Assembly: GCA_040285825.1 (NCBI GenBank)
Contig: JAUPSS010000002.1
Location: 3,596,001-3,660,000, forward strand
Source of the DNA: Eukaryota sp. TZLM1-RC
Taxonomy: Eukaryota > Protista > Metamonada: BaSk clade
DNA: 64,000 nucleotides
Direction: 5' to 3'
Shown: positions 4,828 to 38,829 of the stretch, in pieces
Numbering within the stretch: position 1 is the stretch's first letter
How the letters are laid out: the number at the start of each line of letters is the position of its first letter
Notes under the pieces: generated by a model
Told to the model about the DNA's origin: nothing
Seen by the model: the letters and a program-made list of their open reading frames with translations, nothing else
The model's database searches: none
Translations under genes and position numbers: made by a program

Positions 4828-5118
4828 CTGATGCTTTGATGGTGTATAGCATTGTCAGTGATTGTTACATGCAGACAACCATTTTCGAAGCATTGGTAGC
4901 CAACCACTACAAACTTGGCCATCGCTCCTATGATGTGATTTACACCAATAACTTTGACAAATTACCCCTGTCTGAGTACAAACACGTAAATCTCTATATT
5001 AATGGTAACAGCCACTCTACCTCAACTTTCAAGGTCCTCTATGATGCTGTTGACAAAGGTCTGAAGCTTACAGTTTTTGGTGGGTCCGTACTATTGGACC
5101 CGTAAATCGGCCGACATA
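4828..5118 (+). pseudogene. Rearranged partial duplicate of the GAT1-like repeat gene
   Basis: 4828-5086 is near-identical to 25348-25606. 5095-5118 matches 26301-26324. Confidence 0.85.
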
Positions 5119-13541: not shown

Positions 13542-14156
13542 TCACATTGCAGCACCCATTTCTTCACGAGGTTTAAAAAACTCTCGACACATAAATCTGT
13601 TAAGTGTGTCATAAGACCCGTGATGGATCTTATCCTTAACCCTACATCTTGATTCATATTTTGCTACCAATACAAGATTCATTAATGAACATCCAAAAGA
13701 TAGGGATAACTTCTCAAGGAACTTTAAACCTGGAAGGAGGAAGCAGATAACATGCATGGGACTAAAGAAAATGAACAATACCTTGCATCCTACAGATGGT
13801 TCCCATAAGTGCAGCTCTTGACCTGGTACCTGCACACTTCTACGCATGAAGGAAAAGAAACCCTGCTTGGGAGCAACACGGTGCAAAGAGGTTTCTTCCT
13901 CGGCATTTTCGGATGGTATCAGATACTTGCGATGTCGAAAAGTAAACATAATAAAGTTAACAAAAGATATAAGTACAAGATATGGCTTGAGAACTTCTGG
14001 ACCTAGACACGACATGTATAATAAGTAATTGAGGATAGCCGCTATAGCCAGAGCCCTAGTGAATCTTAACAAATCAGAGCTATCAAGATTGAGCATCTTG
14101 AACAGAAACCAGGCTTCTGTATTTGAGGGGGCGTCTGCAGGAAATTTAGAACTCAT
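13542..14156 (-). CDS. Nur1/Mug154-like (DUF2418) inner nuclear membrane protein
   Basis: 204 aa with two pairs of TM segments and the motifs LWEPS..KVLFIFFSPMH and KDKIHH..YD..NRFM. Confidence 0.6.
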   Translation of the reverse strand: MSSKFPADAPSNTEAWFLFKMLNLDSSDLLRFTRALAIAAILNYLLYMSCLGPEVLKPYLVLISFVNFIMFTFRHRKYLIPSENAEEETSLHRVAPKQGFFSFMRRSVQVPGQELHLWEPSVGCKVLFIFFSPMHVICFLLPGLKFLEKLSLSFGCSLMNLVLVAKYESRCRVKDKIHHGSYDTLNRFMCREFFKPREEMGAAM

Positions 14157-14229
14157 GAGAGTTTAAACAATTGAATAGTCAATTCGCAAATCAAAAAATT
14201 GAGTTTCCCGGCATTTCTATCTACAACAG

Positions 14230-15318
14230 ATGAGCTGGCGTAAATACGTAAGTGCGTCTCAAACTGCTTCACAACGAACTCCATTTACGTCCTCACAAAT
14301 TGGAAGTTTCAATTCATCTCAAGTTGGTCCATATTCATCATCTCAGAATGCTTTTTCCAACTCCCAAACAAGTCTATTCACGACACATTCTCAACCAGAT
14401 AATGCCAGTTCATTTTCGCAAAGATCATCTAATGGTGTGAATAAGTTTTCAACATCACAATTCTCACTTCGTAAAACAAGCCCATCTCAACCTGTTTCTG
14501 ATCTTATCCACATAACTAACCAAAATCAAAGAGATAGAGAAAATCAACAACGATTACTAGCCCAATTACCATCAAAGGATGACTTTTCCAACCTTGAGAA
14601 TATTTGTGAAAAACGATTTGTCAAGATTGAAAACAAAATAGAAGAGAGTCATAAGGAGACGATTTTAAGGGTAAATAAGTTGGAGGCAATGATGGAACAC
14701 TTGCAAAATCAATTGAATGGAACCATGTCTGTGTTATCAGAAAACAGTCATGTGGATTATTCCAAACAGTCAATTGACGTTCAAAATGTTGGTAATCAAA
14801 TTTTTGATAAATTGGACCTAATTGGAAGGGAAATTTACAAAGTTAGATCTAATGTTGCTTTGTCTGTGCAAGAATCAAATCAAAAAGCTTTAATTTTGCA
14901 AGAAGGGATGTTTAAGGAATTTTACAATGAACAGATGAAAATGAATACGAATATGGAGAAGATGCAGCATGAATTTACGCAAAAAATGTCTGAAAATGCA
15001 AACATTTATTTGATGAAAGAAGAGGAAAAGAACAACGAAAAAACCAACATTATCCAAGAAACACCAAAACTAGAACACCTACCAGTTCGTTGTGCATCAG
15101 ACACGAGTGACAACAGCCAAGATCAACGGGCTTCAGCAATGGTGAATCAACTGAAGAAACAAATTGAGAAGAAGTGTGAAGTTCAAGAAAATGATGACAT
15201 GTTTGATATGTTTGAAGATGTGTTTGCATTTGAACAAAACACTCCAGATACTCATGTGAGGAATCACAGAGCTACACGTACAGTGGCTCCTCCAAGGAAA
15301 AGACGGAGACGACGTTGA
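14230..15318 (+). CDS. SQ-cluster coiled-coil nuclear protein
   Basis: 362-aa intact ORF: N-terminal SQ repeats, central heptads, C-terminal PPRKRRRRR NLS. It is head-to-head with the Nur1-like gene (73 bp apart). Confidence 0.75.
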   Translation: MSWRKYVSASQTASQRTPFTSSQIGSFNSSQVGPYSSSQNAFSNSQTSLFTTHSQPDNASSFSQRSSNGVNKFSTSQFSLRKTSPSQPVSDLIHITNQNQRDRENQQRLLAQLPSKDDFSNLENICEKRFVKIENKIEESHKETILRVNKLEAMMEHLQNQLNGTMSVLSENSHVDYSKQSIDVQNVGNQIFDKLDLIGREIYKVRSNVALSVQESNQKALILQEGMFKEFYNEQMKMNTNMEKMQHEFTQKMSENANIYLMKEEEKNNEKTNIIQETPKLEHLPVRCASDTSDNSQDQRASAMVNQLKKQIEKKCEVQENDDMFDMFEDVFAFEQNTPDTHVRNHRATRTVAPPRKRRRRR

Positions 15319-15635
15319 GCATTCAACGAACAGTAAATAAAAGATATAAAATAAACGATATATTTAGTATTTTTCAAGGTAGGCAAGTTGATAAAGAAAT
15401 CACTAGTAGCAGATACACAGGACTTGTTGGTGGTAACACGATTGGAGGAAATTGAAATTCAACAGGTTGCTTGCTTTCAATAAACCCAGAGGATAATACT
15501 ATACAAAAAACCTTGGACAACCATCAGCACTGGTAACATTAGTTCAAAACAGTCTAGATAAGTGGAAGATTTGAGAATGAGCAAAATGATTAATTTGCCG
15601 AAACAACCCTTTTTCCTTTCCTCTTTACTTACAAC

Positions 15636-16407
15636 ATGGCTATCGGAAAGAATAAACGTACCGGTGGAAAGAAGGGTGGACGTAAAAAGGTGTATGTTCA
15701 CTTATGCGTCTTATCCCAGTGTTGATGCCTTCGCCAAGAAAGAATGGTATGATATCAGAGCACCTGCTATGTTTGTCAACCGTGATGTTGGTAAAACTGT
15801 CGTATCTAAAACCGCTGGTTTGAAGCTCGCCTCAGATGGTCTCAAAGGCCGCACCATCGAATCACATGTTGCTGATCTTAACAACAATGATGATCAATAC
15901 AGAAAGATTAAGCTCCGCATTGAAGACGTCTCAGGAAAAACCTGCCTCACCAACTTCCACGGAATGTCCTTCACCAGTGACCGTTTAAAGTCTCTTATCA
16001 AGAAGTGGCACTCTTTGATTGAAGCACACATTGACGTCAAGACCACTGACGGTTATATTCTCCGTCTCTTCTGTATCGGTTTCACTGCCACTGTCAGGGG
16101 ACAAGTACGCAAGACTAGTTATGCCCAGAGTTCTCAAATCAGAAAGATCCGTGCCAAGATGTTCTCTATCATGAAGAAGGAATCATCAACTGACCTCAAG
16201 ACCTTCGTTGCCAAACTATCAGGTGATAAGATTGGTAATGAAATCACCAAAGCTTGCCAAGGCATCTACCCCCTTCAGAACGTTCACATCAGAAAGGTCA
16301 AGGTTGTTCGTGCCCCCAAATTTGATGCCGCTCGTTTAATGGAGCTCCATACTAAGCCAGTTGAAACTGGTGAAGTTGTCGCTCCCGCCCCAGAAGTGAC
16401 TGCTTAA
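15636..16407 (+). CDS. RPS3A: 40S ribosomal protein S3a (eS1); exons 15636-15691 and 15720-16407
   Basis: [17 protein letters not shown] spliced through a 28-nt GTATGT..CCCAG intron to [16 protein letters not shown]...[14 protein letters not shown]; 247 aa. Confidence 0.97.
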
Positions 16408-17024
16408 TTTGATTTTTGTTATTTCGTTTAGTTTTGTGAGAGGTTGGTCTTAACAAAACACAGTTATCATTAGGTTTTAATAAACATCTATCTGTGTTGT
16501 TTCAGTTTCACAACACATATAATTCTTCAAACGTATTTACTTCTTATTCGTATTTACTTATTTTTCAAACGAAATAATTATACAAATGATTAATTTGCGG
16601 GTTTTCCACCATTACGTAATTTGTTCAATGCCATTCTCACATGGACAGATTGCATCCTTCTAATTGTTGTTCCAATGAAGAATTAAATAGTGCTGCTTAA
16701 CCTAAGTCCATGTTTTGTACAACAACATTATTTTAAAACAAGTGTATAAACAATTCTCTGATGTGAAATTATTTGACATTATTTTGTAGCCCAAGGAATC
16801 AACACAAGAAAATCACAGACTATGTGGTCAAAATTTGCTGCGCTTCAATCAGATTTTCAGAGGTACGGAATTTATCCTTCTCTCAGGTCATTGCCCCAAT
16901 TACTCCCAGTCGTTTCTTTCTGATTCATTTGGGATAGAAGATAAACAATTTGTACTGTATTCTGTTCTTTTAAATTATCTCCCTGAATTTTTTTAATATA
17001 TTTAATTTATTCTAAAAGATACAG

Positions 17025-17910
17025 TCTAAAAATCAAAATCTTCAAAACAAGCTTCCACACCATAAAACTGTACAACTGCAATGTTTTCGTAATGTGCACT
17101 GACAGACATCAAAGCTTTCGAAATCATTTTAGGAATTGTTTTGAAAATAGTAAAAACAATACGATTTAGCCAGAAACGACAATCAAAACACTTCTTCAGT
17201 TTTCTTTTTAAAAATCTTCAAAATCATCAATAAAATTCATAGCAGTTTTTCCAAGACGACCATACAAAGAAATAGCAAATGGCCAAATATGGTAATCTAC
17301 ATGGCGAACATGTTTCAATTCTTTCAAAGGATTTGTATGTTTTTTTCGTTTGTACAATTCTAAGTCATCAAGGAGAGATACTTCGGATTGTGCATTTCTC
17401 AAAGCATTTTTCATGCAAACGTCCACTGTAACGACATCAACAACATTCAAGACATCATTAAACGACGGCACAACAACATCAGCACGTCGTTTTATATATT
17501 TTGAATATCTTACGTTTTCATTTATATCAAGAGACTTCATCAATGATTCTACAAATGATTCAATATAATGGGAATTACACATTGCATGAATTTCATCTCT
17601 GACAGCATTATGCAAAGTGAACCGATAAGAAATTAATCTTTTGCAATTGAATAAATGTGTAAATGTCAAACCAGCTCCACATTTGCAAAACAAATCATTG
17701 AGCAAAATACAAGGCCATAAATAACAACGCATTCTCATAGCGGTGGTCTATTGACCGTCATTCAAAAATAGCCATTAAACTGGGGAATTTGATGCAACAA
17801 AACTGTAGATGAACTCTCCTTCAAATCAATCAAAAAATTTGCAAAAACAGGATCTTTTTGCTTAGCCGTGCTAAGTCGAACAATAAAATCCTTACTTTCA
17901 AAATTGTTCT
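17025..17910 (-). mobile_element. 3' fragment of RLE non-LTR element (family C)
   Basis: MRMRCYLWP, CKCG..H..NC, HNAVRD, RADV, K.KKH, PFAISLYG; ends FEDFDF*. Confidence 0.85.
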
Positions 17911-17929
17911 CTTAAATACAAATAGAATC

Positions 17930-18905
17930 CATTTATCAATATCCTTTAGATGATACCACATTTTCTTGTACAATGTGTTTTCGATGTTTTATTTGTCAAT
18001 ATAAGGTTCATCATAATTTGGTTTCAAATGTGGTTCAAAAATTTCTCCAAATCATTTGTTTTACTGTATACATTTCATTACTTTTCGATCAAAAGTCTAT
18101 GATGCAATTAGACGTCAGCTCTATTGTATCTCTAAGTCTCACCGAATTGTCTCCTATTTGGGACCAATACTTTCACGTTTGGTTGATGAGAACATTTTGA
18201 ATTCTTTTGGTCGTAACAGAGGCGATTTAGTGCTTGAAGGACTTGATGGACCACTATCATTACTGATGTGTGTAATAATTCTTTCATACCATTAGCTCAG
18301 TCAAAACACAAGACTCCGCTCTCTGTTGCCGAAAATTCTAAAATTGATAAATATAAAGCAAAGTTGGTTTCCTTGAATACTGAATCTCACACTCATTATG
18401 TCCTTTGTCCATTTGCTTTTTCCTTACATGGTACGCTTGAATCACTTGCTTTATCTTTTATGGATGATTTTGTTGAAATAGTAAAACAACGTACAGGAAG
18501 AATTTTTGAAAAAACGTTTTGGCAGAACAGAGATGTATTTTCAATTTTCAAAGCTGTTGTATCGTTATTGTCTTCTGCTTTATTATCTCTTGGTCGCTTT
18601 TATGAAGGAAAAACTTCCAGTCAATTTTTGTTGGCTGATTTGGGATATCAAGATCTAACCCTTTGAATGACTTCCAAAAAATGGTGCAAGAAAAAACAAT
18701 GAGAAGATTTGATATATTTTTATGGCGTTCACGGATTCAATTTGCCATTATTAATAGATTACCACGGTTTTTCAATCGAATAAGAGAAGCTTTAGCTAGA
18801 CAGCAAGCAGATCGAGATTTTGTAGAGGAAATCTTGGTTCAATGATAGTCGTCCCATTAGTATTGAGTTAATTTAATTAAGTGTGCAAATTCAATAAATA
18901 AAAAA
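17930..18905 (+). mobile_element. RLE non-LTR 3' fragment (family D) directly fused to a family B 3' end (from about 18664)
   Basis: RGDLVLEG..ENSKIDKY..PFAFSLHG, followed by DFQKMV..DFVEEILV and the family B 3' UTR. Confidence 0.8.
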
Positions 18906-19020
18906 GATATCAAGATTTAGAATTTTCATTTTTGTGTTTAGTTTTATGAAAGTAATAAATTGAAAATTATTGAAAAAAATTTATCAACATTTTATCAAGT
19001 TCATCAATCTCTACTTCAAT

Positions 19021-19495
19021 ATGGAATCACAAAACGTTGACCTTTCCACATTACCTCCAGAAGCCCTTGAAAGCATCGTCAAGCAAACTGAACAAGAAAT
19101 ATCTATTCTACGATCCTCTATAGTTCAACTTCGATCTGCCCAAAGCAGATTTAGACAATCAAAGGACTCTCTTGATCAACTCAACACTACAGAACCAGAT
19201 TCTGAAATGTTGGTTCCACTTACTGATTCGGTTTGCCTAATCTCCGTTTTAACCTCAGCTTTATGTACCCGGTAGATCGAGGGACACATCTAAAGTCCTA
19301 GTTGAAATTGGTACAGGTTATTATGCCGAACGTAAGGTTGATCAAGCCAAAGGTTACTTTTCTAGAAAGGTTAAGTACCTTGATGGTCGTATCAAAGAGT
19401 TATCTGAAGCACATGATCAGAAGAATCAATTGCTCAATGTTTCTTCACAGTTGCTAAGACAACACCAACAGGCTGCATCACAAAAAAGCCAATAA
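19021..19495 (+). CDS. PFDN5: Prefoldin subunit 5 (alpha); exons 19021-19230 and 19259-19495
   Basis: EMLVPLTDS|LYVPG...VLVEIGTGYYAE...AKGYFSRK after removing a 28-nt GT-AG intron; 148 aa. Confidence 0.93.
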
Positions 19496-19598
19496 AATAT
19501 TAACTCAATATGTAATAATCTAACAAGTTTTTTTATTAATAGCAACAATAAAACAACCTACTGAATTTTTGATTAAAAATAAACAACACACGCAAATC

Positions 19599-19933
19599 TT
19601 ACGATGAAGTAGCAGTCTTTTGCAGTTGTTGTAACTGATTGTAGGCAGATTTCAGTTCTTCAGACATTTTCTCAATCGTGGCTTGAAGAATGTCTCTATT
19701 TTGCTTAACAGCAGGATCGACTTCACCAACAGTACGTTCTACAAGTACTGATCCGACCATTCGGTAGCACTTCCTCCCAGAATCGAGTTTGCTCAAAGAA
19801 TCAAGAACAACGCTAATGTGAAAAGAAGGGCTGTTGCATACTTGTGTTCATGACGACTACTTTCAAGTTCAGAAAGTTTTTCTTGCATTGCGGAAATGTG
19901 TTGTTTTAGCTTTTGGATGTTTTCAGATGCCAT
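19599..19933 (-). CDS. PFDN2: Prefoldin subunit 2 (beta); exons 19933-19842 and 19812-19599
   Basis: ELE...HEH.VV.D.L..LD..RKCYRMVGSVLVERTVGEV after removing a 29-nt GT-AG intron; 101 aa. Confidence 0.92.
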
Positions 19934-20324
19934 TGGTTGTGAGAGTATATGGGTTAAGTAAAGGAGATGTTTGTGAGAATCAAAATCGCTAAAATGGTTT
20001 ATTCAAATTCTTGAATTCGGTATCAATATTAATCAACTATTTTCGATGTTCGACATTGAAACAAAATTATGTATTTGAGATCAGGGAAAGAGCTGAGCAA
20101 GATTAAATGCGATTGAAATAGGAATAGGAGACCACCATGTAAGTTCTAACCAAACCGATGTGCTTTTCAAAGTCCAGGTTCATGTTGCTTAAAACTCGCA
20201 AAATGCTTGTACAATTGCTTAGCCATTTATTTATTTTGATTAAAAACGGTTGAGATCGTTGACAATTGAGCTCAATGATTGATGATACATCAAGTTTGGA
20301 CGATAACAAATTCTATATAATATA

Positions 20325-21770
20325 ATTTATTGAGTTTGCACACTTGATTAGATTAAATCATAACTAATGGGACGACTATCATTAAACCAAGATTTCCTCT
20401 ACAAAATCTTGATTTGCTTGCTGTCTAGCTTCTCTAATTCGATTGAAAAACCGCAGTAATCTATTAATAATGGCAAATTGAATCCGTGAACGCCATAAAA
20501 AAATATCAAATCTTTTCATTGTTTTTTCTTTCACCATTTTTTGGAAGTCATCCAAAAAAGTTTCTATTTCAACTGATAATCTTCCATTAATCGAAAATGG
20601 GAAAGCAATAAAAACGAGCTGTGTATTTCTATCGACATTTGCCTCTTCAATGTCTTTATCATATTTTCTATGTTTCTCTCTTGCTTTAAAATCCAGAGCA
20701 GCCACCGGATTAAGTTTTCTTCTGTGAACCAAAGTATCAATTGCAACATTACATGAGACAAAGTCAACAATAGCTTCAGAATTATCAATCCAATCACAGT
20801 ATACATCACCTCTATCATCAGAACCAAAATTATTCAGAGAAAGTGTTTCCTTCAGCAGGGGCTCTTTGATACACGATATCATTGCAGTTTGCGCCATATT
20901 GAAAACAGTGTCTCTAACAGCATCATGTAATGAAGAACGATAAGTTATCAATTTAGAGCAATTTAGAGCATGGCGTAAAGTGAGTTGAGGTGAATTCGAA
21001 CAAATACATTTTTCTTTTGATAATAATTGGTTAATGGGGATGTTCAAATATAATCTCATTTTTGTTACAAATGCTTCATTAGTGGCACACAATCCAAATC
21101 TTCGTGGTACAATGGTTACAAAAAGTGAAGAATCTGACGCCTTGTTTTCACAAACACCCTTTTCCAATAACAATGAGTGAAGATCTTGATTTAAAACAGC
21201 CGAGCTGCAAATATTATTATAAAGATCTTTTTCATACATTCCAGTCAATCTTTTCTGTAATGTTCGAAGAGTGTACTTCAAATTTAAAACATTTTTTTCT
21301 GGAATATTGCCATTGAATGATTGGGGAAAACATCGACCCCATTTTTCTACATCAATTCTTGAAATTTCTTCATTTAATGCAAAAACAGTGGAACTTTGCG
21401 TTGTCATCAATAAATCTTCCCAATCTGCAAATCTTTCGGAAAACTCAAAGATTGCATTTCTGCATCCACCAACAAAAGCACACGAGGTAATAATAGAAGC
21501 CTTCGTCCACCCTAAACCGCCATAATGTGGACTAAGGTAAGCATGATTTGGAATTTGAAACATTTTACATCCCAGTAATTGAGACAGAACCTTTGCCGTA
21601 ACTCATTAAACTTTTGAGCCAAAGGTCTAGTGACGAGAGGATTTGTAGATCGAAATATATGATTAAAATTGGAACTAAAACACAGTCTTATAATGGTAAA
21701 TTTGATGTGTTGTTTTATATCTAAATTCATCATTCGGTCAATTTTATATAATTGAATTAACATTTATGAG
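20325..21770 (-). mobile_element. 5'-truncated RLE non-LTR element (family B)
   Basis: CICS..H..NC, HDAVRD, RGD..D, K.RKY. Near-identical to 56851-57934, including the 3' UTR. Confidence 0.9.
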
Positions 21771-24640: not shown

Positions 24641-24692
24641 TGAAAGCAGAAATCAATAATCATTATCAGATTATTCTTGATTGGATTTGCAA

Positions 24693-27600
24693 ATGTGGCA
24701 TTTGCTGGTCTTCTGCTCACTGTTGCTTCTGTCCTCGGTACACTGCAATACACTTTTGCTTTCAACTGGTGTTGAGGATGTTTCTCACATCAAATCTGCT
24801 CTCAGTGTTGTCGATCATGTTGAAGCTGAGCATTATGTAGATGTTGATTTGTTCGCATATACAGATGTCATTGTTGCTCTTAACTCAGGTTCTCTGAATT
24901 CTAAGGATGCCCAAGTTCTCAAAATCTTTGTGGAAAATGGAGGGCGCCTTGTCTTCTTCGGAGGAAGTACCAGTAGCTCGTTCCACGACACTCTCTCTGA
25001 AGTTATCATGTTTGAAGAAAGATCTTGGAGACAGCCTGGAACAACAGTTTCTATCTGGGATGATGCGTGCCAATTGACGACATTCCTCCAAGATTCGGTG
25101 GTCATCACAGATGAGTCTTCATTCCGTACCTTTGGAGTTGTTGCTGATCCACTTGCCCGAGTTTGCCTCCGTGACGAAACTGGTGTTCCTGCAGTATTCG
25201 CCAAGCCCTTTGGTCAGGGTGTCCTCTCCTACATCAATCTCTCTCCCGATGCAAAGTTTTACCAATCATCGTCCACTCAGACCTTCCTCCGTCATCTTCT
25301 CTCCAATGCTTTGCTCCTCTCTGCTGGTCAAGCTAAATGGGATAGACCTGATGCTTTGATGGTGTATAGCATTGTCAGTGATCGTTACATGCAGACAACC
25401 ATTTTCGAAACATTGGTAGCCAACCACTACAAACATGGCTATCGCTCCTATGACGTGATTTACACCAATAACTTTGACAAATTACCCCTGTCTGAGTACA
25501 AACACGTAAATCTCTATATTAATGGTAACAGCCACTCTACCTCGACTTTCAAGGCCCTCTATGATGCTGTTGACAAAGGCCTGAAGCTTACAGTTTTTGG
25601 TGGGTCAACCGGGCTGTCCTCTGCATTGTCCAATAGTAATTTGCTGAAAACCAATACGATGTCTTCATCATGGTTTTCATCCAAGGGTGTTTATCTTTCA
25701 GATTTGCCTAATCATCCATTAACAGAAGGTTTGAATGTGGATTTGTCGTTTATAGATACTTCTATCGGTAAGTATTCTGTAAAAGTCACGGATCCAAATG
25801 CCACTGTTGCTCTTCGTAATGCTGATGGATGGCCGTTTCTACTAACCAAGCAGATTGGTAAAGGTTTCATAACCTTTTCCACTTTTACAACAGTAAACGA
25901 GCTCAAACCACTTGATAAACATTCCTTGTTGAAGATTGTAGACAATTGTTTCTCATTGAGATACCGAGAAGCTGAGTATATCACTCATGAGGTTCTTTTA
26001 ATTCAAACTTTTTCTGCTGAAAGTCCTGTGGATTTACTACCTACTGAATGGTTTTTGAGAGAAGAAGGTATTAAATATAATGTTGTTGCTACCAATGAAT
26101 ATGATGATGTCAATCCTTCTCCTTATGAAACAATCATTATTGTTTTTAATGGTGGTAGTTTTCCTTCCCAACAAATGAACATTATAAATTCTTGGTTGGA
26201 AAAAGGTAAAAGAGTCGTCTTTTATGGTGGTAGTTCCGCTTCTTCTTACCTTTCACTTATGGACTCAATGTTTATCAAGCTCCGTACTACCAGAACTCAA
26301 TGGACCCGTAGGTCGGCCGACATAGATTTGATGGTGGTAGACCCCAGTGATCCCCTGACATTTAACTTGCCAAAAGAACATTCATTCAAGAAATCCTCTT
26401 GTAGATCTTCTGCTGTTGATATTGCTGATCCCAGTGCCAGGGTCTCCATTCGACGTGAAAACGGCCTTGGCTTTCCCTTAGCTGCTACCAAGGTCGTTAG
26501 TGGTGGTGTGGTGGTCTTGATTGATTTTGCACCAGGAACAAGCTGTGATGCTGATGAGGACCGTGATTATTTCAATCAATTGTTATTGAACTCTTTGAAA
26601 ATTAAAGCCAAGGACACGGAATGGACCAGAAACAAGGTTTTGCTATCCATTACTGCCAGTAATTCTGATGATTCTCCCTTGGAAATGAAGGGGTTACACT
26701 ATGCTTTAATTGATGCTGGAATTGATTATGATTTTATTATGCCCAACTCATTTAATATTAATGATTTAGAATCTTATAGCACCTATTTCATTGCTTACAA
26801 TGGTGGCTCTTTTGCTTCAGATCAGGTTAAGGATATTGAATATCTAATGGCCAATAACAAGAGAGTCTATTTCTGGGGGGGTAGCAGATCCCAAAGTTTT
26901 AATGCTAACTTTAGAGATGTTTTCCATATCACCACCAATTACGATTGGATCTCAACTGGACTTCCTCATCTAGAATCATTTGAAACTGGCAGATTCAACA
27001 CCAAACTTCCATTCAACGCTACCTTTGACAAGACTTTGAAGTATTGCATTCGTCCAAGTGGTCGTGACGGAGTGATCTACCAACGTAATGGTGATGGTTA
27101 TGGCGCTGTTGCTTGTAAATCTACTCAGGATTGGGGTAATTCTATCTTTGCTTTAACAACTTTTGTTCCTGATTTTGATAGAAATTCTTCACTCTTTTCC
27201 TATGTTCGTCAATTGGTGCTCAATTTCTTCCAATTGGCACCATCTGATTGTAAATCTCGTAAAAGAAACCATGCAATTCAACTAAGTCATTCTGAATCAA
27301 TGGTTCCTTCCCAATTCAAGACTGCTATTGATTCTGCTCAAGCTGCTTTGGGAGGAAAACCTTTCAATCTTGGCGGCAACCCTGAATTTGATTTTTATTT
27401 TGGTGATAAGGATCTCTTTAATCCTGCTGATTATCACAGTATTTTCATAATGTTAAATGGTTACGACTTTGATACTTCATTTTACGAAAGACTCAATAAC
27501 ACCATGTTGAGCTCTAGAATCAAGGTATTCTTCAGCGGAGGTAGCGGTACTTCTTCTTTTGCAGGCAATTTGAACAAGTATTTGTTACGAAACAGCTATC

Positions 27601-27896
27601 CTGGAAGATGGCAAACATCCACTCAACCAACTTATAGACTGACCTCTTCTCACGATCTCACAAGAAGTTTACCTCAGCAACATGAAGGAGATCGAAGTTC
27701 CAGAAGTTATGTTGTCAAGGTTGATGATGGTAGTGCACGAACACTAGCGGTCAATGGTGATGGAATGCCTTTCTTGGTTCAAAAGAGAGTAGGCTCGTCT
27801 GGTTTTGCTTACGTTGTTTGTCCTTTTTCGGATTGGGAAGTTCAAGATTTGTTCGTCCAAAATGTATTGATTCATAATTTTTACCTTTATTTCTAG
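24693..27896 (+). CDS. Secreted protein with about 5 tandem class-I glutamine-amidotransferase-like (ThuA/DUF4350-like) repeats
   Basis: Signal peptide MWHLLVFCSLLLLSSVHC from ATG 24693. A roughly 200-aa unit with Y..I...NG/NSG...G.R.VF.GGS and H.LT..L...NGDG.P occurs five times. Intronless. Confidence 0.8.
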   Translation: MWHLLVFCSLLLLSSVHCNTLLLSTGVEDVSHIKSALSVVDHVEAEHYVDVDLFAYTDVIVALNSGSLNSKDAQVLKIFVENGGRLVFFGGSTSSSFHDTLSEVIMFEERSWRQPGTTVSIWDDACQLTTFLQDSVVITDESSFRTFGVVADPLARVCLRDETGVPAVFAKPFGQGVLSYINLSPDAKFYQSSSTQTFLRHLLSNALLLSAGQAKWDRPDALMVYSIVSDRYMQTTIFETLVANHYKHGYRSYDVIYTNNFDKLPLSEYKHVNLYINGNSHSTSTFKALYDAVDKGLKLTVFGGSTGLSSALSNSNLLKTNTMSSSWFSSKGVYLSDLPNHPLTEGLNVDLSFIDTSIGKYSVKVTDPNATVALRNADGWPFLLTKQIGKGFITFSTFTTVNELKPLDKHSLLKIVDNCFSLRYREAEYITHEVLLIQTFSAESPVDLLPTEWFLREEGIKYNVVATNEYDDVNPSPYETIIIVFNGGSFPSQQMNIINSWLEKGKRVVFYGGSSASSYLSLMDSMFIKLRTTRTQWTRRSADIDLMVVDPSDPLTFNLPKEHSFKKSSCRSSAVDIADPSARVSIRRENGLGFPLAATKVVSGGVVVLIDFAPGTSCDADEDRDYFNQLLLNSLKIKAKDTEWTRNKVLLSITASNSDDSPLEMKGLHYALIDAGIDYDFIMPNSFNINDLESYSTYFIAYNGGSFASDQVKDIEYLMANNKRVYFWGGSRSQSFNANFRDVFHITTNYDWISTGLPHLESFETGRFNTKLPFNATFDKTLKYCIRPSGRDGVIYQRNGDGYGAVACKSTQDWGNSIFALTTFVPDFDRNSSLFSYVRQLVLNFFQLAPSDCKSRKRNHAIQLSHSESMVPSQFKTAIDSAQAALGGKPFNLGGNPEFDFYFGDKDLFNPADYHSIFIMLNGYDFDTSFYERLNNTMLSSRIKVFFSGGSGTSSFAGNLNKYLLRNSYPGRWQTSTQPTYRLTSSHDLTRSLPQQHEGDRSSRSYVVKVDDGSARTLAVNGDGMPFLVQKRVGSSGFAYVVCPFSDWEVQDLFVQNVLIHNFYLYF

Positions 27897-30165: not shown

Positions 30166-30886
30166 ATGCGTAGGTCCTTGACTGTTATCTGCCTAGTTGG
30201 CTTATTGTTCTTAACTGTGTCCAGTACTAAAACCAGTAGTGGACTTGTTCAACATGCTAGGATGGTTTGTAATTTTGCTTTCTCTTACCGTATGCCCTTG
30301 GTGAATCATGGGGGTTTGTTACTCCAACGAAATTCTGATCATTAGCTATGTCTGGGGAACGATTGGCCAGGTATTAACCGAATCAATCCTGCAACAGAAA
30401 ATCCGTCAGTACCCCGATCTCAAACCAGTTTGTTTTACCTCTGCGATTTACTCCAGAAAGAGGCAGAAATTCGAAATAAGTATCTCGGTAAGCGCACTGC
30501 CGATTGGTTTGTATTTTGTTGTTCTTTCTGATTGCAGTGTTGGACTCATCAAATCTTACTTGTGGTGGAATGGTGGAAATATTGTATGTCTACAAGATGA
30601 AGTCTAATTGCATGCTTACGATAAATCACAGGATAAAACAGCCGAGCAAATGTTTAAACTCGCCCCCAAATCAGGTCCTATCAGTTCTCTTCCCAATGTT
30701 CCTGGCCTCTGTCTTTATCTCAAAGGACACATTGGCGTCTATATTGGAGATGGATGGGCTATTGAATCCAAAGGATTCGATTACGGTGTAGTACAAGTAT
30801 GTTCAGCAATAGTTACTTATCATTAGACACGTGTCCAAGGTCGAGGTTGGACAAACTGGATGCAATGTCCTTTTATCCGATATTAG
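30166..30886 (+). CDS. Secreted NlpC/P60 (endolysin-like) peptidoglycan hydrolase, 7 exons, 179 aa
   Basis: Exons 30166-30264, 30294-30313, 30346-30427, 30457-30506, 30538-30583, 30614-30796, 30827-30886. They give a signal peptide plus KTSSGLVQHARMALGESWGYVWGTIGQ..RTADCVGLIKSYLWW..GHIGVYIGDGWAIESKG..GVVQT..WTNWMQCPFIRY, with Cys-His-Glu in NlpC/P60 spacing. Confidence 0.85.
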
Positions 30887-32444
30887 ATCGTGTTAACACA
30901 TTGGCTATTTAACTATAAATTTATGTAAATAAGCGCATGTACAGTGAATTCTATAGTTTAAAGTTCAAGTCATTGTTATGAATTAAAAGAGGAGGTATTT
31001 ACGATGAGCCTACATCAGCTACCAATTGGGAGACATAACTTGTCTTGGATTATCTTCTAAGCCTTCACTGTTGAAGTAAAGGAGAACATCACATGTTATA
31101 GTTGAAATAGATTCATAAAAGTGGAAATTTTGCTTTTTGATTTAGTTGCATGATACAGAATGACACCAGACACCACAAACAGACTCAATTATTTTAATTA
31201 TTATTCTTCTGTTTCTTCCTAATCTGCATCAAAATTGAGTAAAGTGAATCTCCTCAATTGTTTAAATAAAGAACATGATTTTTTTACCAGACCATCTTGA
31301 AACAGTTCATAACCAATGTCCAAGATGTCGATTATCGATATTGATGATCTATGTTAAATGCAGCTGTTTTAGTTGGGTTTATTTTATTCAGTTCAAAGTT
31401 CAATTCACTGCATTATTTGATTCGAAATGGAAAAATGATGAATTATTTGGTGAAAATTGATGACCAATTGATAAATTGCAGAAAATATTCAGAACCACAC
31501 AACAATCTTTTTTGAAAAAAAAAGTGTTCTCTTCTATGTTGATGTAGACCTCAGTTGCTGGACTCTTACAGTGACTGCATATGAGTCAGTGGGTTTTGAA
31601 TGGTGATATTGAGGTATTGCATAGTTGTTCAATGGCAATGACAAGGGCTACTTGTCAACTTGTGTTTTTGACTTGAATCACATGTCTTAATGAAACAATT
31701 GTCATGTTACTGGAATTGCTCTTATCTAAAATTTCCTTGTCAGACAGAAGTCCCAAAAGAACCAGTGTTCGGACACCACCATGTGGACCACGTGGTGCCA
31801 CCATGTCCATTGACCATTGTCAATATACTAGCGAACTTTTCTTTAATTCATTCAAATTCAGGTGACAATAATCCACTTATTGCTTCAAACAAATACAAAA
31901 TTGTTAAATACGCCAAACCTATTTCTTCTGTCAATGAAAACTGTTATGTCCAATAGAATTTATGTCCTTTTGTGTTCCTTACTTGTATCTTTAGGTATGG
32001 CTGCTATGACGTTTTTTAAGGTTATGATGTAGTTGTGAAGGAAAAAACTGGAAGAATTTTCAATCATGTTTACTGGCCAAACAGGATTGTATATTCTATT
32101 TTTGGGGCAATGATGAAATAAATTTCTTATTCACTCTCTTCTTTTTGGAAATTTTCTGAATCCTTAGTAATTAATTATTTTGATGTAGGGGAGGTAGATT
32201 TTGAGGATTTGGAGCTTTGGTTGTGTATTTGATGATTTTTTATTCGATTAATTAATCTGTATTAACAAAGCAAAGATGAACTGTTAGTCTTTACACTATT
32301 CTAGAGTGTAGATAGACTTATCTATTTGTTCTTGTTTATTAGCTTAATGTTCATTGTTTATTCATGGAGACCTCACTAGTGATGGTATTGAAATTCACTA
32401 TAGCTCATTTCTCGTCGTAATAAAATTACTATCTGTTCACATAT

Positions 32445-34688
32445 ATGTCTGACTCTAGCCCACAGGCAACAATAATTATTGGCCGTTCTTCGGCTAACGA
32501 ACAACAGGCTCCTCTGGATGCAGCCTCACCTCCGGGTGGAACCAATCTCGGCCGTAGGGATTCCGACTCCCATCTCGCCAACAATCCTCAGGATTCAGAG
32601 GGGGACCCTCCTACTCCTGCCAAGGATTCTTCTTCTCCCGAAGAAGCCAACGCAGACACCTCGAAAGAGGAGTCTACCTCTACGGCTTCCAAGGAGTCGA
32701 AAGATTCTACTGGTCAGGTTCGTCCCTCCTCTCCTTCTCCCAAGGTATCTACTCCCACTAAATCTAAGTGGCAGTATACCTTGGAGAAATTCCGTAGAGA
32801 TTTAGAACTATGGGACTTCCTGGATCTGGTCGCCTTAAAGGCAGAACTTGCTACTCGTGCTCCTAAGGACCACTTTGAGCAGTTCATGATCCAGATGTTC
32901 CTAAACGAGTCTCCTCCTCGGATTCCTTCGGTTGAAGAGGACGGGGACAACTTTAAGTTCTTGCTGATGCCCCAACCCTATGATCCATTGACTCATCCAG
33001 ACCCGGATTGTCTTATGGATTTCTATCCATTCCGTCTGGACAGGGAATCAGCAGTTGAACCCAACCCAGGCCAAGTTTTCGCCGCTCGTAGTGCTTACGG
33101 TCAGGAGCTCTCAAGAGTATGGAACTCGTTGGATAACCCTCCTACTCTCAGAAGTCTCCCAGCTAATCCCGAAACCACTCCCACACCTTCTCGTCAAGAG
33201 AAAGTGGCTGTTCACGGTGAGGATGAAGACGGTAACCCATGCGTTTTCTGGGTACCTAGGAGTCAAGTTCTCTCTCCTGATCCCTCCATCCCTAAGCCCC
33301 TCTCTGGAGATTTGTCCGTTTCGGATCTCGACACTTCTCCTCCCATCCTTCTCCCATCTAACGCGGTGGATTTCGACTCTCTTAGTATTCCTAAAACATC
33401 ACAGTCCACCACCAAAATCAGGGACAGCCCCTCTCGCTGTTTCCCTAAAATCACTAGAGATGGACAAGAAGTTGATCCTACTTTTGATGGTGTTCCAGGT
33501 CACACTGGATATGATAAACCCATGGAACAAGTAGACAGGATGCGTCAGACTAAAGCATCAGACTGCGGAAAAACAGTCTATGGTGCTAGTCTCCCTCCTC
33601 AAAACGCCACTACTACCACTAACGCTGTTCTTGCGGCCATGTCCAAAGCGTCTCGTAGTTTATATGACGACCGAGCCAAGAAACTTCAATCAGATCGTAA
33701 TCGCCCTCGTCTCAAGAAGGACATGATTACCAGTACTGGCAAGGTCATTGCATTCATTAATGACTTCATCTCTTGGGCGTACAATGATAGAATCTCTCAA
33801 GATTTCAAATGTGACCCCAACAACCCTCGCGAAGTCGCTCTAACTAATGAAATTGCACGTCTCACACAACTTACAGAAGCTCATAGAGCCTGTACTCTCC
33901 GTGCTACTCATCATCCCAACTACATTCCGTTAAATCAACGATACGATGAGCCAGCCCACGAGTGGGACATTTTCAGAGCTGGCGCTAAAATCAATCCAGC
34001 TGGCATCAGCTCTTGCGTTGACACCGATGTCATATCTACCCTTGCCATGGCTGCAGGTGGTACAAGGCCCGGTCTCCAACTCCATCAAATCAATGAAGAA
34101 CTGTGGGAGAACATTCTCTTCGCTTCCCAGTTTCCAAATCTGGCCACTGCCAAACTCACATTATCCCAAGTCAAAATGGACTGGAATATCTCCAATTACC
34201 AGAGTAGATGGATTAAATATATATCGCAGGTCGGCTTTGTCGTCAATCAATCAATGGGGATGAGAGATACACTAGCTATCGATCGCTTCCAACCCCATCA
34301 AGAGGTAATCAAGCTCGAAGAATGGGACATTGCGTTCTCTATTCTCGACAACCTCGGAATTGACCCTCTCTTCAACGAACTCTTCAATCCTTGGACGTAC
34401 TCTTCTGTTTACGTTAAACGCCGTCTAAGTGATTTCATCGATGTTCTCTCTAAGTTTTATAACAACTGGTGTAATACCAGAACTTTCGAGGAACAAAAAG
34501 CGAGCTCGGAAATCCGTCAGAAACTTCACTGGTCCAGGAGCTCAAGGTCCTATGTTCGGTGGGAGACCCCATCCCAAAGACCAAAAGCTTATCGACACTT
34601 ACGATTATGTCGAACAAGTATCGACCAACAAGGAGCAGCTCAGACGCAGAGTCAAAAATCTAAAGAAACGCTCTGCCAAAGACGATAA
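32445..34688 (+). CDS. gag: Gag-like ORF1 of the gypsy element
   Basis: 747-aa ORF starting inside the 5' LTR, with a long Pro/Ser-rich N-terminus. Confidence 0.75.
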   Translation: MSDSSPQATIIIGRSSANEQQAPLDAASPPGGTNLGRRDSDSHLANNPQDSEGDPPTPAKDSSSPEEANADTSKEESTSTASKESKDSTGQVRPSSPSPKVSTPTKSKWQYTLEKFRRDLELWDFLDLVALKAELATRAPKDHFEQFMIQMFLNESPPRIPSVEEDGDNFKFLLMPQPYDPLTHPDPDCLMDFYPFRLDRESAVEPNPGQVFAARSAYGQELSRVWNSLDNPPTLRSLPANPETTPTPSRQEKVAVHGEDEDGNPCVFWVPRSQVLSPDPSIPKPLSGDLSVSDLDTSPPILLPSNAVDFDSLSIPKTSQSTTKIRDSPSRCFPKITRDGQEVDPTFDGVPGHTGYDKPMEQVDRMRQTKASDCGKTVYGASLPPQNATTTTNAVLAAMSKASRSLYDDRAKKLQSDRNRPRLKKDMITSTGKVIAFINDFISWAYNDRISQDFKCDPNNPREVALTNEIARLTQLTEAHRACTLRATHHPNYIPLNQRYDEPAHEWDIFRAGAKINPAGISSCVDTDVISTLAMAAGGTRPGLQLHQINEELWENILFASQFPNLATAKLTLSQVKMDWNISNYQSRWIKYISQVGFVVNQSMGMRDTLAIDRFQPHQEVIKLEEWDIAFSILDNLGIDPLFNELFNPWTYSSVYVKRRLSDFIDVLSKFYNNWCNTRTFEEQKASSEIRQKLHWSRSSRSYVRWETPSQRPKAYRHLRLCRTSIDQQGAAQTQSQKSKETLCQRR

Positions 34689-37600
34689 ATCTGCTGCGTC
34701 CCCTTCTGACATCTGTGGATTTTGCAAAGAGCCAGGTCATTCAGTCAAGGAATGCCTACATCCACATTGCAAGAGATCTGCAATTCCTAAGAATAAGCGC
34801 CGTAGTTTGGATAGTTACAGTAGTAGTGATAATAAACGTTCTCGTAGTTACAGGATCAATACAATTAACACCAAGAATCCACAATCTACCAACGTCAATC
34901 CATCTTCAGATCATACTACTGACTCCCTCAAACAATCGTTTATGACATCATCACATTCTCCTCCCAAACGCCTCTTAAATCCTTTGAGCACATGTGACCC
35001 TGAATCTTCGCATACCAATAGAATTTTTAGTTTGTCTTCTGTTTGTGCCAATAAATCTATTAATTGTCCCAAGTTTATTGAACTCTGGTTGCAGATTAAT
35101 AACATAGAGGTATCTGGTCTTATTGACAGCGGAGCATCCATATCCGTCATCTCGAAAGACCTATCTACAAAATGCAAGATGGAACACTGCACTGAATCTG
35201 TCAAATTCATTGGTGTTAACGGAGAACCATCAAACTCTGACGGCAATGCCAAAGGAATCCTATCCTTCAACGTCGGCAGCATTGCCAAAGTTGTGCATCT
35301 TACCAAATCGTTACCAATCGTTCCAGGCAACAACATTCTAATTATAGGAATAGACATCCTATATGAACTCGGCCTCATGAACAACGACAGGGTATACATT
35401 CATCTCGATGAGCTTCACAGAACACTAATGTTACCTGAATCTGAGTTTGACCACAGAATTTCACAGATATCTGACCTCAAGGTGTCAAAAACATTCGAAG
35501 ATCACGTCAACTCGTCAGGTTGTCAAATAAAGCTCAACAATCAATCAGAAAATCAACAGCTCCTCGCAACTCTTGAAGAGTTCAAAGATGTTTTCACGTT
35601 GAAACCCCATGAAGACGGCATCGACTGTAACCCCATGGACATCGATTTCTACGATGAAGACACTGTTGTTTATCGTCCACCTCGCAGGTTAAACCCTGAA
35701 CGACTCAAAATCGCCAACCAAATCTTCGATGAGTTAATCGAATCTGGTTTCGCCACAGAATCCAACGGTAGATTCAGCTCCCCAGTCGTTCTTGTAGTTT
35801 ATCCGGATCATCGGAAACCACGTCTTACAGGCGACTTCAGTGGCCCGAACGGAGTCAATGCAAACACTATCCCCATTGCTCCAAACCTTCCAAAGATCTC
35901 TGATGTATTAGAGTTCTTATCTCAAGCCAATTACATTGGAACACTTGATCTTCCAAAAGCATTTTGGCAACTCAAGATCAACGAAAGAGACATCGAGAAA
36001 ACCACCCTCAGCATTCCTGGTCGCAGTATCAGCTTCAACAGGGCATGTTTCGGTCTCAAGAACGTCCCCGCAGTGTTTCAAAATGTAATGTCCAACATCT
36101 TTAGCATCGAAGGCGTGTTTATCTACATCGACGATATCATTATCATAGGTAATACCCTTCCTCAATTCATCGACAGGCTCAAAGCCGTCCTCTTCCGCGC
36201 TAAAGAGAAGCGGGTCAGCCTTGGCCTACCAAAATGCCATTTCAAGTCTAAAGATCATGAAATCAAGATTCTTGGTAGTATCTTCGTCAACGGTACACGC
36301 CAAATCGATCCCTCACGACTAACTGGACTAGTCGAGCTTCCAGCTCCCAAGACAGTGAAAGACGTCAGAAGCTTTGTAGGATCCATCAACTACATTAGAG
36401 ACTGGCTGCCTTCGGTATCCGAAATCATATCACCTATCATCGAGCTTACCAGAGGAAACCCTCGCCGTATCGAGTGGACCTCAGATCATGAACTCCGCTT
36501 CAACAAGATCAAGCAGCTCGTAAAGGAGAATATGCCATTGAGTTTACCCCCAGCAGATAACCGTGTCCTTATCAGTTGTGACGTATCAGACATTGCTATT
36601 GGCGGCGTCATTTGGGAAGAATATGATCCTTGTGAACACAATGGCACTCCTCTCATTGACCGTAAGGTCAGACCTATCAGTTTCTTCAGCAGGATTCTCT
36701 CCAATTCCCAAAAGAATTGGTCAACGATGCAGAAAGAGCTTTACGCTATACTTTTCATCCTAACAGAATCATGCATCGAGAGTTACCTTAAAAGCAGGAA
36801 GCTCACGATATTCACAGATCACAAGAACCTCTCATATCTGGTAACAGCCCCTGATAAGAATCGAATTGTCACACGTTGGTTACCAATACTCAGTGAGTTC
36901 GACTTCGAGTTGGTACACACCTCGGGGGAAGACAACTACTGGGCAGACATGCTATCCAGACAGGTCCCAACGACCAATCCTGTACGCATAAACACAATCA
37001 ACACAGGCAACACTCGTTCATCAGCGAGCGAGACCACCTATGAACCGTTTCACCCAATCTATTATATCAGAAACTATGATCCATCAGACGACTCCGCTCT
37101 TCCAGATCCAGACGACCTTCGGGATACCCACAAAATCCTCATTCTAAAAGAGAAATGTGCATCTGCAATCCCCATGTTCGATCCTTGGTTGAGTAGAATC
37201 CGTTCAGAGCAAAGACAAGCTGTTGCAGCTCACGAACGTTCATTTAATAACTGTTCCGTCAATCATCTTGACCTCTACGTTAACGAATCAGGCAAGATCA
37301 TCATCCCGTCATCACTCATCAACGACACGCTCTTGATTATACATGGTTATGTATCAGGCGGTCATCCTAGTATGTCTGAGAGTTTACGCAGGCTATCCTC
37401 TAGCGACTACTACTGGCCCAATATGACTGATGATATGAAGAACCACGTGCGTTCTTGTCCATCATGTCAGAAAACGGCACCTGTCCCCAAATCTATCACT
37501 CCTTCCACCGGATCTCTCTGGGCTGACAAACCCTTCGCGAGATTGAACGTAGATACCATTGGTCCTCTTCCTCCAGATCAAGAGGCCAATAAGTACATCT

Positions 37601-38634
37601 TAGTTTTCGTGGACAGTTTCACTCGGTATACCATCCTCGTGCCCCTCAAAGAATTAAACGCAAGGCTGACAGCCGACGCTTTGATTTGGAGTGTGTGCGC
37701 AATCTTTGGTATACCTTACAGCATTCACAGTGACAACGGCCCAGAATTCGCCAACAACGTGTTTAAATCACTGTGCGAATTCCTGTCTATCGACATGACG
37801 AACAGTATTCCAAATTTCAGTCAATCAAATGGCCTAGTTGCACGACGTCATAGAGTTATTTTACAAAATCTTAGGAAGCTCCTAATCGATTTTAACGCCT
37901 ATGACAACTGGTCAGAATACATACCTTACGTACAACTCTTAACGAATTCGTCTAAGAGCTCTGTCACAGGTTTCAGTCCATTCGAGCTTATGTTTGGGTC
38001 AGACGTCAGTCCCAGAGCTGACCCTTTATCAATTTTCTCCACCATCGAAAAGGCTACCACTGAGGTTCCTTTCATTCTGGATATCCAATCTAAATTTAAT
38101 CGATTGAAAGAAAAACGAGAAAAAGCAGAAACCACCCAAACATCGAAATCGCCGGAGGAAAAGCCAAGCACGAGTAACCTGCTATTCGAAGTTGGATGTT
38201 TAATCCTCAAATCATCTAGTAACTCCAAATTACATGGGAATTATCTGGGCCCATATTTGGTCATCGACAAACCTAGTAAATCAACTTTATTATTAAAGAA
38301 TTTAATCACAGGTGTCGAATCTAAGGCTAGCATTTCACAATGCAAATTGTACCATTCTGACAAACCCACTGATGATGAGTTTCATCGTATCGTGGCCTCA
38401 GGTGATACTGAGGAACATCTTCTATTAGAAGTTCTCAGCCAGGATGGTGACGTGTGTCAAGTCGTATACGCTGGAGATGTACGAGGCACCGAGCCTGTCG
38501 ACCGCATTAAGAACACCAAGGCCTACCAAGCCTTCCTCCAGACTAATAAGTCACGACCCCCCACTAGTCAACCTACTCGCAAACAACCTCGTAGAAGAGC
38601 TAGAAAAGACCGTCGAAAGGAGGGGAAGAAGTAG
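34429..38634 (+). CDS. pol: Gag C-terminus (CCHC) plus Pol polyprotein
   Basis: CGFCKEPGHSVKEC; protease LIDSGAS; RT LDLPKAF, FGLKN, YIDD; RNase H CDVS, KEL, TDH, WADMLSR; integrase H..H..CPSC, VDT, SDNG. The third acidic residue is Ala. Confidence 0.95.
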   Translation: MISSMFSLSFITTGVIPELSRNKKRARKSVRNFTGPGAQGPMFGGRPHPKDQKLIDTYDYVEQVSTNKEQLRRRVKNLKKRSAKDDKSAASPSDICGFCKEPGHSVKECLHPHCKRSAIPKNKRRSLDSYSSSDNKRSRSYRINTINTKNPQSTNVNPSSDHTTDSLKQSFMTSSHSPPKRLLNPLSTCDPESSHTNRIFSLSSVCANKSINCPKFIELWLQINNIEVSGLIDSGASISVISKDLSTKCKMEHCTESVKFIGVNGEPSNSDGNAKGILSFNVGSIAKVVHLTKSLPIVPGNNILIIGIDILYELGLMNNDRVYIHLDELHRTLMLPESEFDHRISQISDLKVSKTFEDHVNSSGCQIKLNNQSENQQLLATLEEFKDVFTLKPHEDGIDCNPMDIDFYDEDTVVYRPPRRLNPERLKIANQIFDELIESGFATESNGRFSSPVVLVVYPDHRKPRLTGDFSGPNGVNANTIPIAPNLPKISDVLEFLSQANYIGTLDLPKAFWQLKINERDIEKTTLSIPGRSISFNRACFGLKNVPAVFQNVMSNIFSIEGVFIYIDDIIIIGNTLPQFIDRLKAVLFRAKEKRVSLGLPKCHFKSKDHEIKILGSIFVNGTRQIDPSRLTGLVELPAPKTVKDVRSFVGSINYIRDWLPSVSEIISPIIELTRGNPRRIEWTSDHELRFNKIKQLVKENMPLSLPPADNRVLISCDVSDIAIGGVIWEEYDPCEHNGTPLIDRKVRPISFFSRILSNSQKNWSTMQKELYAILFILTESCIESYLKSRKLTIFTDHKNLSYLVTAPDKNRIVTRWLPILSEFDFELVHTSGEDNYWADMLSRQVPTTNPVRINTINTGNTRSSASETTYEPFHPIYYIRNYDPSDDSALPDPDDLRDTHKILILKEKCASAIPMFDPWLSRIRSEQRQAVAAHERSFNNCSVNHLDLYVNESGKIIIPSSLINDTLLIIHGYVSGGHPSMSESLRRLSSSDYYWPNMTDDMKNHVRSCPSCQKTAPVPKSITPSTGSLWADKPFARLNVDTIGPLPPDQEANKYILVFVDSFTRYTILVPLKELNARLTADALIWSVCAIFGIPYSIHSDNGPEFANNVFKSLCEFLSIDMTNSIPNFSQSNGLVARRHRVILQNLRKLLIDFNAYDNWSEYIPYVQLLTNSSKSSVTGFSPFELMFGSDVSPRADPLSIFSTIEKATTEVPFILDIQSKFNRLKEKREKAETTQTSKSPEEKPSTSNLLFEVGCLILKSSSNSKLHGNYLGPYLVIDKPSKSTLLLKNLITGVESKASISQCKLYHSDKPTDDEFHRIVASGDTEEHLLLEVLSQDGDVCQVVYAGDVRGTEPVDRIKNTKAYQAFLQTNKSRPPTSQPTRKQPRRRARKDRRKEGKK

Positions 38635-38829
38635 TGTTAGTCTTTACACTATTCTAGAGTGTAGATAGACTTATCTATTTGTTCTTGTTTATTAGCTTAA
38701 TGTTCATTGTTTATTCATGGAGACCTCACTAGTGATGGTATTGAAATTCACTATAGCTCACTTCTCGTCGTAATAAAATTACTATCTGTTCACATATATG
38801 TCTGACTCTAGCCCACAGGCAACAGAACA

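Follow-up and report, generated by a model that had tools for sequence, protein, structure and literature searches.

The AG dinucleotide with which introns end is among the most invariant signals of eukaryotic genes, and a G(−1)·G(+1) pair secures it within the active site of the spliceosome. A gene of Skoliomonas litria, a free-living, bacterivorous flagellate among the metamonads of soda lakes, raises the question of whether AT may serve as an intron end as well and, if so, how such an end would be selected. The DNA analysed here (the window) is a stretch of 64 kb from contig JAUPSS010000002.1 of assembly GCA_040285825.1. It is eukaryotic, with a G+C content of approximately 35% and many retroelements, and it is matched at all 20,721 bases by the locus of the deposited protein KAL0224458.1 (P9112_003848). 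A sequence-only reading had proposed that two introns of the gene for this protein are spliced at AT acceptors chosen by their distance from the branch point.

As for the surroundings of the gene, an apparently intact LTR retrotransposon of the Ty3/Gypsy type (32283–38680) lies 1.4 kb downstream of it, with gag at 32445–34688 and pol, in a different frame, at 34429–38634; the sequence at 32283 is repeated identically at 38636, which points to LTRs. An intronless gene at 24681–27896 encodes a secreted-looking repeat protein of 1067 aa, for which a faint DUF4350 match was the only one obtained, and a partial copy of its sequence is present on the minus strand (approximately 4900–5100).

The host gene and its splice junctions

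The gene (30166–30886, + strand) has seven exons, and its frame of 179 aa is open once six introns of 29–32 nt are removed. The resulting protein aligns end to end with NlpC/P60-like endolysins of Firmicutes and phages, is 55–59% identical to prokaryotic NlpC/P60 proteins and has a phage endolysin as its closest annotated relative. Its DCxG and GHIG motifs, which supply the Cys and His residues, align with those of the homologues, and the Pfam family PF00877 (NLPC_P60) is matched with 23.6 bits at a cut-off of 23. The N-terminus is hydrophobic, as is typical for a signal peptide. A search for a solved relative of KAL0224458.1 returned none. The product is best described as a predicted peptidoglycan hydrolase. 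The gene is of the bacterial or phage type with a gained signal-peptide-like start; the loci compared were 30166–30886, L011 (10001–10734) and L012 (10001–10617).

Introns 2 (30314–30345, 32 nt), 3 (30428–30456, 29 nt), 4 (30507–30537, 31 nt) and 6 (30797–30826, 30 nt) are of the GT-AG kind, with the branch A at −8, −7, −7 and −8, respectively; intron 4 falls within the codon for Cys84, presumably the catalytic residue. Intron 1 (30265–30293, 29 nt) lies in phase 0 between Met33 and Ala34, has the donor GTTTGT and the branch motif CTTAC, with its A at 30287 (−7), and ends TAT|GC. It is followed by exon 2 (30294–30313), of only 20 nt (ALGESW+G). Intron 5 (30584–30613, 30 nt) is also in phase 0 (Ile99|Ala100), with the donor GTATGT, the branch motif CTAAT (A at 30607, −7) and the end CAT|GC. 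Re-reading of the sequence bore out the coordinates, lengths, donors, branch motifs and YAT|GC ends that had been given for the two introns, as well as the statement that intron 1 contains no AG.

The junctions were then searched for without regard to splice motifs, as sets of introns whose removal from the genomic range yields the deposited protein of 179 aa. Exactly six introns are required, and every solution at introns 1 and 5 that starts with GT ends with AT; the remaining solutions at these introns are slides of 1 nt that lack a donor. The sequence-only observation is confirmed. The deposited KAL0224458.1 is identical to the 179-aa model, both AT junctions included.

All in-frame models restricted to GT/GC-AG introns were also enumerated, 411 for the intron-1 region and 178 for the intron-5 region, and were scored against a profile built from 116 homologues, all of them prokaryotic. 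The AT model scored 239.9 bits, and the canonical-only models reached at most 221 bits in the intron-1 region and 231.9 bits in the intron-5 region. The best canonical alternatives for intron 1 (approximately 221 bits) employ a poorly matched donor in a GC-AG intron of 52 nt, at the cost of Ala34, Leu35, Glu37 and Trp39; among the homologues, Ala34 is conserved in 112/116 and Trp39 in 113/116. For intron 5, the sequence-only reading was correct in noting an in-frame TAA (30605–30607), which would be read if the intron were retained, and an internal AG, at 30602, that is out of frame, but it missed two in-frame AG options ending at 30631. The first of these, 30602–30631 (30 nt, 231.9 bits), leaves the length of the protein unchanged and lacks both a branch motif and G+5; the second, 30584–30631 (48 nt, 220.2 bits), likewise has no branch motif. 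Both were rejected, and both lose Tyr101, at the start of exon 6, which is invariant in all 116 homologues.

The deposited model takes the AT site at intron 5 despite the canonical 30 nt option of equal length. The deposited gene models of S. litria derive from an RNA-seq/PASA pipeline, and neither AUGUSTUS nor GeneMark, as far as we know, predicts AT acceptors unaided. The intron-5 junction of the deposited model, known through its protein and gene range, therefore suggests indirectly that transcript evidence underlies it. A search of read assemblies (Logan) gave no cluster members for ten Skoliomonas proteins, eight of them from S. litria. It is highly probable that introns 1 and 5 are spliced at AT.

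A paralogue, a sister-species homologue and a cyclophilin gene

A paralogue, KAL0206549.1 (P0142), is encoded on contig JAUPSS010000010.1; the two proteins are 65% identical, and the paralogous gene has introns at all six of the KAL0224458.1 positions. Its intron 1 is again 29 nt long, ends TAT|GC and has the branch A at −7, although the interior of that intron has diverged (5/13 bases identical). Its intron 5, of 30 nt at the same position, ends TAG. Between the paralogues, dS is approximately 1.18 and dN approximately 0.27 (dN/dS 0.23), with 30/61 four-fold sites identical. In both, the frames are open and 12/12 donors and branch motifs are intact. Most simply, the AT of intron 1 would predate the duplication and would have been kept over approximately one substitution per neutral site. 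An AT shared at such a dS by genes under purifying selection is not explained by a splice-killing mutation or by an assembly error, and the paralogue argues strongly against both. At the intron-5 position, comparison of the two sequences shows an interchange of AG and AT. The sequence-only reading had named AG in paralogues, with a silent copy in the window, as evidence against itself; this failed to materialize at intron 1, where the paralogue has AT, and AG was found at intron 5. Downstream of the paralogue, tandem repeats of approximately 1.85 kb consist of reverse-transcriptase fragments (L019, approximately 14000–21000).

The homologue of the sister species GEM-RC1, GEMRC1_004473, is 51% identical and aligns straight through both AT junctions, with no intron at either. 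It has two GT-AG introns, at positions other than those of the six in S. litria. Most of the genes around the host gene are intronless. This pattern implies either fast, lineage-specific gain of introns after lateral transfer or separate transfers; the three eukaryotic sequences were not resolved in a protein tree.

Some 11 kb upstream of the window, a cyclophilin gene (L015, 1514–2177; deposited length 172 aa) yielded two further AT introns. This gene was searched by dynamic programming in which branch motifs alone were scored and acceptors were ignored. The conserved AQGGDF and PGLLSMAN segments were recovered in a model of five introns, of which two are GT-AT, and both of the latter are needed. 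One (L015 1752–1783, 32 nt) ends CAT|G, and the other, intron 3 (L015 1881–1910), ends TAT|T. The YAT|GC context to which attention had been drawn is thus common to the two window introns without being a rule. A G as obligatory first exon base after AT was considered and rejected, as intron 3 of the cyclophilin gene shows that it is not required, though G is found at this base in 4/5 AT introns. The same gene has a micro-exon of 7 nt between a GT-AG intron of 27 nt and the GT-AT intron of 32 nt (L015 1718–1783, approximately 11.2 kb before the start of the window), and its intron 4 has two donors, 4 nt apart (L015 1937 and 1941), with one common AG.

Signals and class of the AT introns

Splicing signals were compared in 22 introns of S. 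litria, 27–32 nt in length, a sample that is biased towards AT as both AT-bearing genes were chosen for their AT ends. In this sample 17 introns end in YAG and five in YAT, and all 22 have G+5. In 19 introns the branch A is at −7, and in three it is at −8. The claim that the AT introns have it at −7 holds for all five, but its extension to the AG introns requires correction: 14 of these have the A at −7 and three at −8, among them two of the four in the host gene. The AT introns have the donors GTTTGT, GTATGT and GTAAGT and, in 5/5 cases, T at −9, and positions −5 and −4 of the spacer vary freely in the introns examined. It is apparent that only the last base departs from the canonical pattern: T alone substitutes for G(−1), never A or C, with A(−2) and Y(−3) retained.

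Five single-intron genes that were not selected for their intron ends have AG in all cases. Control introns in the genes for RPS3A, two prefoldins and malate dehydrogenase (15692–15719, 19231–19258, 19813–19841 on the minus strand and 51870–51900 on the minus strand) are single GT-AG introns of 28–31 nt with the branch A at −7. Two copies of non-LTR retroelements (L011 4057–5416 and L017 14613–15649) have deposited 'introns' that lack a donor and branch consensus; these look like annotation patches over frameshifts, and are to be left out of intron statistics.

In 118 kb, the bare motif of donor, YTNAY, two bases and YAT was found 15 times against 10.8 expected, which is not above chance, and the same motif with an AG end 16 times against 5.5 expected. 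With the bare AT motif so near to chance, an AT intron should be accepted only if its junction is fixed by homology or by RNA. Those described above owe their credibility to protein homology, which fixes their junctions, and not to the motif.

With regard to class, introns 1 and 5 have the GT donor with G+5 and the YTNAY branch motif of U2-type introns, and lack the YAG acceptor. The U12-type 5′ splice site, RTATCCTT, occurs in 0/5 AT introns, and a CCTTAAC-type branch motif 9–20 nt from the acceptor is absent, the motif with A at −7 being degenerate. Rfam gave no matches in the 64 kb window. With the fused branch point–acceptor introns of diplomonads and parabasalids they share the near-invariant distance between the two sites, but they lack the long CTRACACRCAG-like motif. 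On these signals, introns 1 and 5 are a non-canonical variant of the U2-type (major) intron.

Selection of the acceptor and comparison with known systems

We consider it likely, with good confidence, that these are functional GT-AT introns of the major (U2-type) spliceosome, in which a ruler measured from the branch point is combined with tolerance of U(−1). The donor, GT(T/A)(T/A)GT, and the YTNAY branch motif would be recognized as they are in AG introns, in keeping with the signals seen in the sequences. The site of exon ligation may then be fixed by distance, 6 nt past the branch A and sometimes 7, with no scanning for AG; the spacing is seen in the introns, and a causal role is suggested by it. 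With A(−2) and Y(−3) kept, a U as last base could pair non-canonically with G(+1), as in a yeast model (PMC10711555). Finally, proof-reading by Prp18, Slu7 or Prp22, or recognition of AG by U2AF1, is presumed to be weak, bypassed or lost at the short distance between branch and acceptor. Where the acceptor is set by distance and U is tolerated, a change of G to T at −1 would be nearly neutral and could persist, and AG and AT would be interchangeable at one position.

That the acceptor is set by distance from the branch point, as had been proposed, is inferred and fits the data: all 22 introns have the A at −7 or −8, with the AT introns confined to the former, and a scan from the branch to the first AG damages the protein. 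At intron 1 such a scan skips exon 2 (to 30345) and shifts the frame, and at intron 5 it deletes six residues, including the invariant Tyr. The spread from −7 to −8 among AG introns indicates that the ruler is not absolute.

In yeast, proof-reading by Prp18, Slu7 and Prp22 rejects YAU. In Saccharomyces cerevisiae lacking Prp18, CAU and UAU are the best-used acceptors without G, and branch distances of 7 nt are usable (PMC10711555), preferences that match the TAT and CAT ends and the −7 spacing in S. litria. A precise spacing of branch and acceptor is known in Giardia, Spironucleus and Trichomonas (PMC6679479). It is very likely, on the evidence of these genes, that S. litria takes AT as a normal intron end. 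The chances are about even that YAU forms a regular second class of acceptors, used constitutively in many genes under a 6 nt ruler and with a second-step check (Prp18/Slu7/U2AF1) lost or altered, which would make S. litria a wild counterpart of the prp18Δ mutant.

Among the alternatives, it is improbable that the AT ends are real and are spliced by way of a dedicated AU-recognizing factor, such as a divergent U2AF1 like that of the tunicate Fritillaria borealis, rather than by a ruler with relaxed proof-reading. Divergent U2AF heterodimers of F. borealis bound a 3′-AU probe and activated non-GT/AG splicing (PMC13326754), and a factor of this kind would suit the occurrence of T alone at −1. 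That preference is already explained by the geometry of the G(+1)·U(−1) pair, however, and a pyrimidine tract would scarcely fit into the few bases that separate the branch from the acceptor. The AT and AG introns, moreover, do not differ in donor, branch motif, Y(−3) or length, and replace each other at an orthologous position.

Decay of the acceptors, in a dead gene or in one that is poorly spliced (through retention, or through the AG at 30631), is less probable still. An in-frame AG does lie 18 nt downstream of intron 5, but the start of exon 6 that would be lost by its use encodes the invariant Tyr. Loss of splicing at intron 1 would have killed both paralogues before the duplication, yet selection, open frames and intact signals persist in both. 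Of the six single changes possible, AT is the one found at each of four independent non-AG ends, and the cyclophilin gene has the same pattern. The preference of the sequence-only reading for real AT acceptors over decay is accordingly strengthened by the paralogue, the deposited protein and the two cyclophilin introns.

It is very improbable that the introns are minor (U12-type) introns, or that they are displaced by 1 nt, with TT/TA...TG ends and the same mRNA. GT-AT does occur as a non-canonical U12 pair in human, mouse and Physarum, but the donors here have G+5 and do not resemble RTATCCTT, and the distance from branch A to acceptor places the A at −7, not at 9–12 nt. A slide of +1 leaves the mRNA unchanged at both window introns, but it forfeits the GT donor and offers no TG at intron 3 of the cyclophilin gene, so that a TG reading is not general. 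An error of assembly or base-calling, with G as the true base, is the least probable alternative: although the assembly is nanopore-based it was Illumina-polished at approximately 206×, and one and the same change of G to T would be needed at the corresponding intron end of both paralogues, whose contigs and flanks differ, and again in two cyclophilin introns.

AT acceptors of this kind would have a bearing beyond this gene. If YAU is used routinely, and AG and AT are swapped between paralogues, S. litria would offer a test, in a wild cell, of a prediction from structure, that U alone can replace G(−1), and of whether proof-reading by Prp18, Slu7 or U2AF1 is dispensable when branch and acceptor are 7 nt apart. 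Gene finders limited to GT-AG will mis-model genes of this group. The AT junctions are already encoded in the deposited annotation, and recurrent use of GT-AT in the lineage was not found in papers: the genome paper of S. litria mentions introns once, in its methods, and a literature search of incomplete coverage found no paper on GT-AT introns as a class in Skoliomonas or other metamonads.

Introns with such ends are known elsewhere as rarities. The DGCR2 genes of human and mouse share a conserved GT-AT intron of the U2 type (PMC1557818), and in Giardia one 30 nt GT-AT candidate is spliced in 1.3% of reads (PMC10711314). These have in common with the S. litria introns a donor of the major type and an AT end, but they are isolated exceptions, whereas in S. 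litria AT recurs, twice in one gene, is required by the one reading frame that is intact and has in one case been kept across a duplication. GT-AT is also known as a rare pair among introns of the U12 type (PMC1557818), accounting for 17% of the non-canonical U12 introns in Physarum (10.1101/2020.10.12.336362). Like those of S. litria, these introns have GT-AT ends and an acceptor limited in position by its distance from the branch point; they differ in having the RTATCCTT donor and a branch point 9–12 nt upstream, as against donors of the major type and a branch at −7.

The fused introns of Giardia, Spironucleus and Trichomonas (PMC6679479) are closer by descent, belonging to related metamonads, and are likewise short, with a near-fixed branch distance that has been shown to matter in Trichomonas. 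They end in AG, one Giardia intron aside, and carry a long conserved motif, whereas the introns of Skoliomonas have a degenerate spacer and may close with T. In Fritillaria borealis (PMC13326754) the major spliceosome also takes non-AG 3′ ends, AU included. There, however, introns without GT/AG make up 95% of the total and are spliced through a duplicated U2AF, whereas in S. litria the donors are canonical, the last base alone varies and a minority of introns is affected. The prp18Δ strain of S. cerevisiae (PMC10711555) accepts HAU ends with the same preference for CAU and UAU among acceptors without G, at sites down to 7 nt from the branch point, and a U(−1)·G(+1) pair has been proposed for it. 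In the yeast mutant these are low-level errors; in S. litria, a wild organism, they apparently serve as the normal junctions and are annotated as such.
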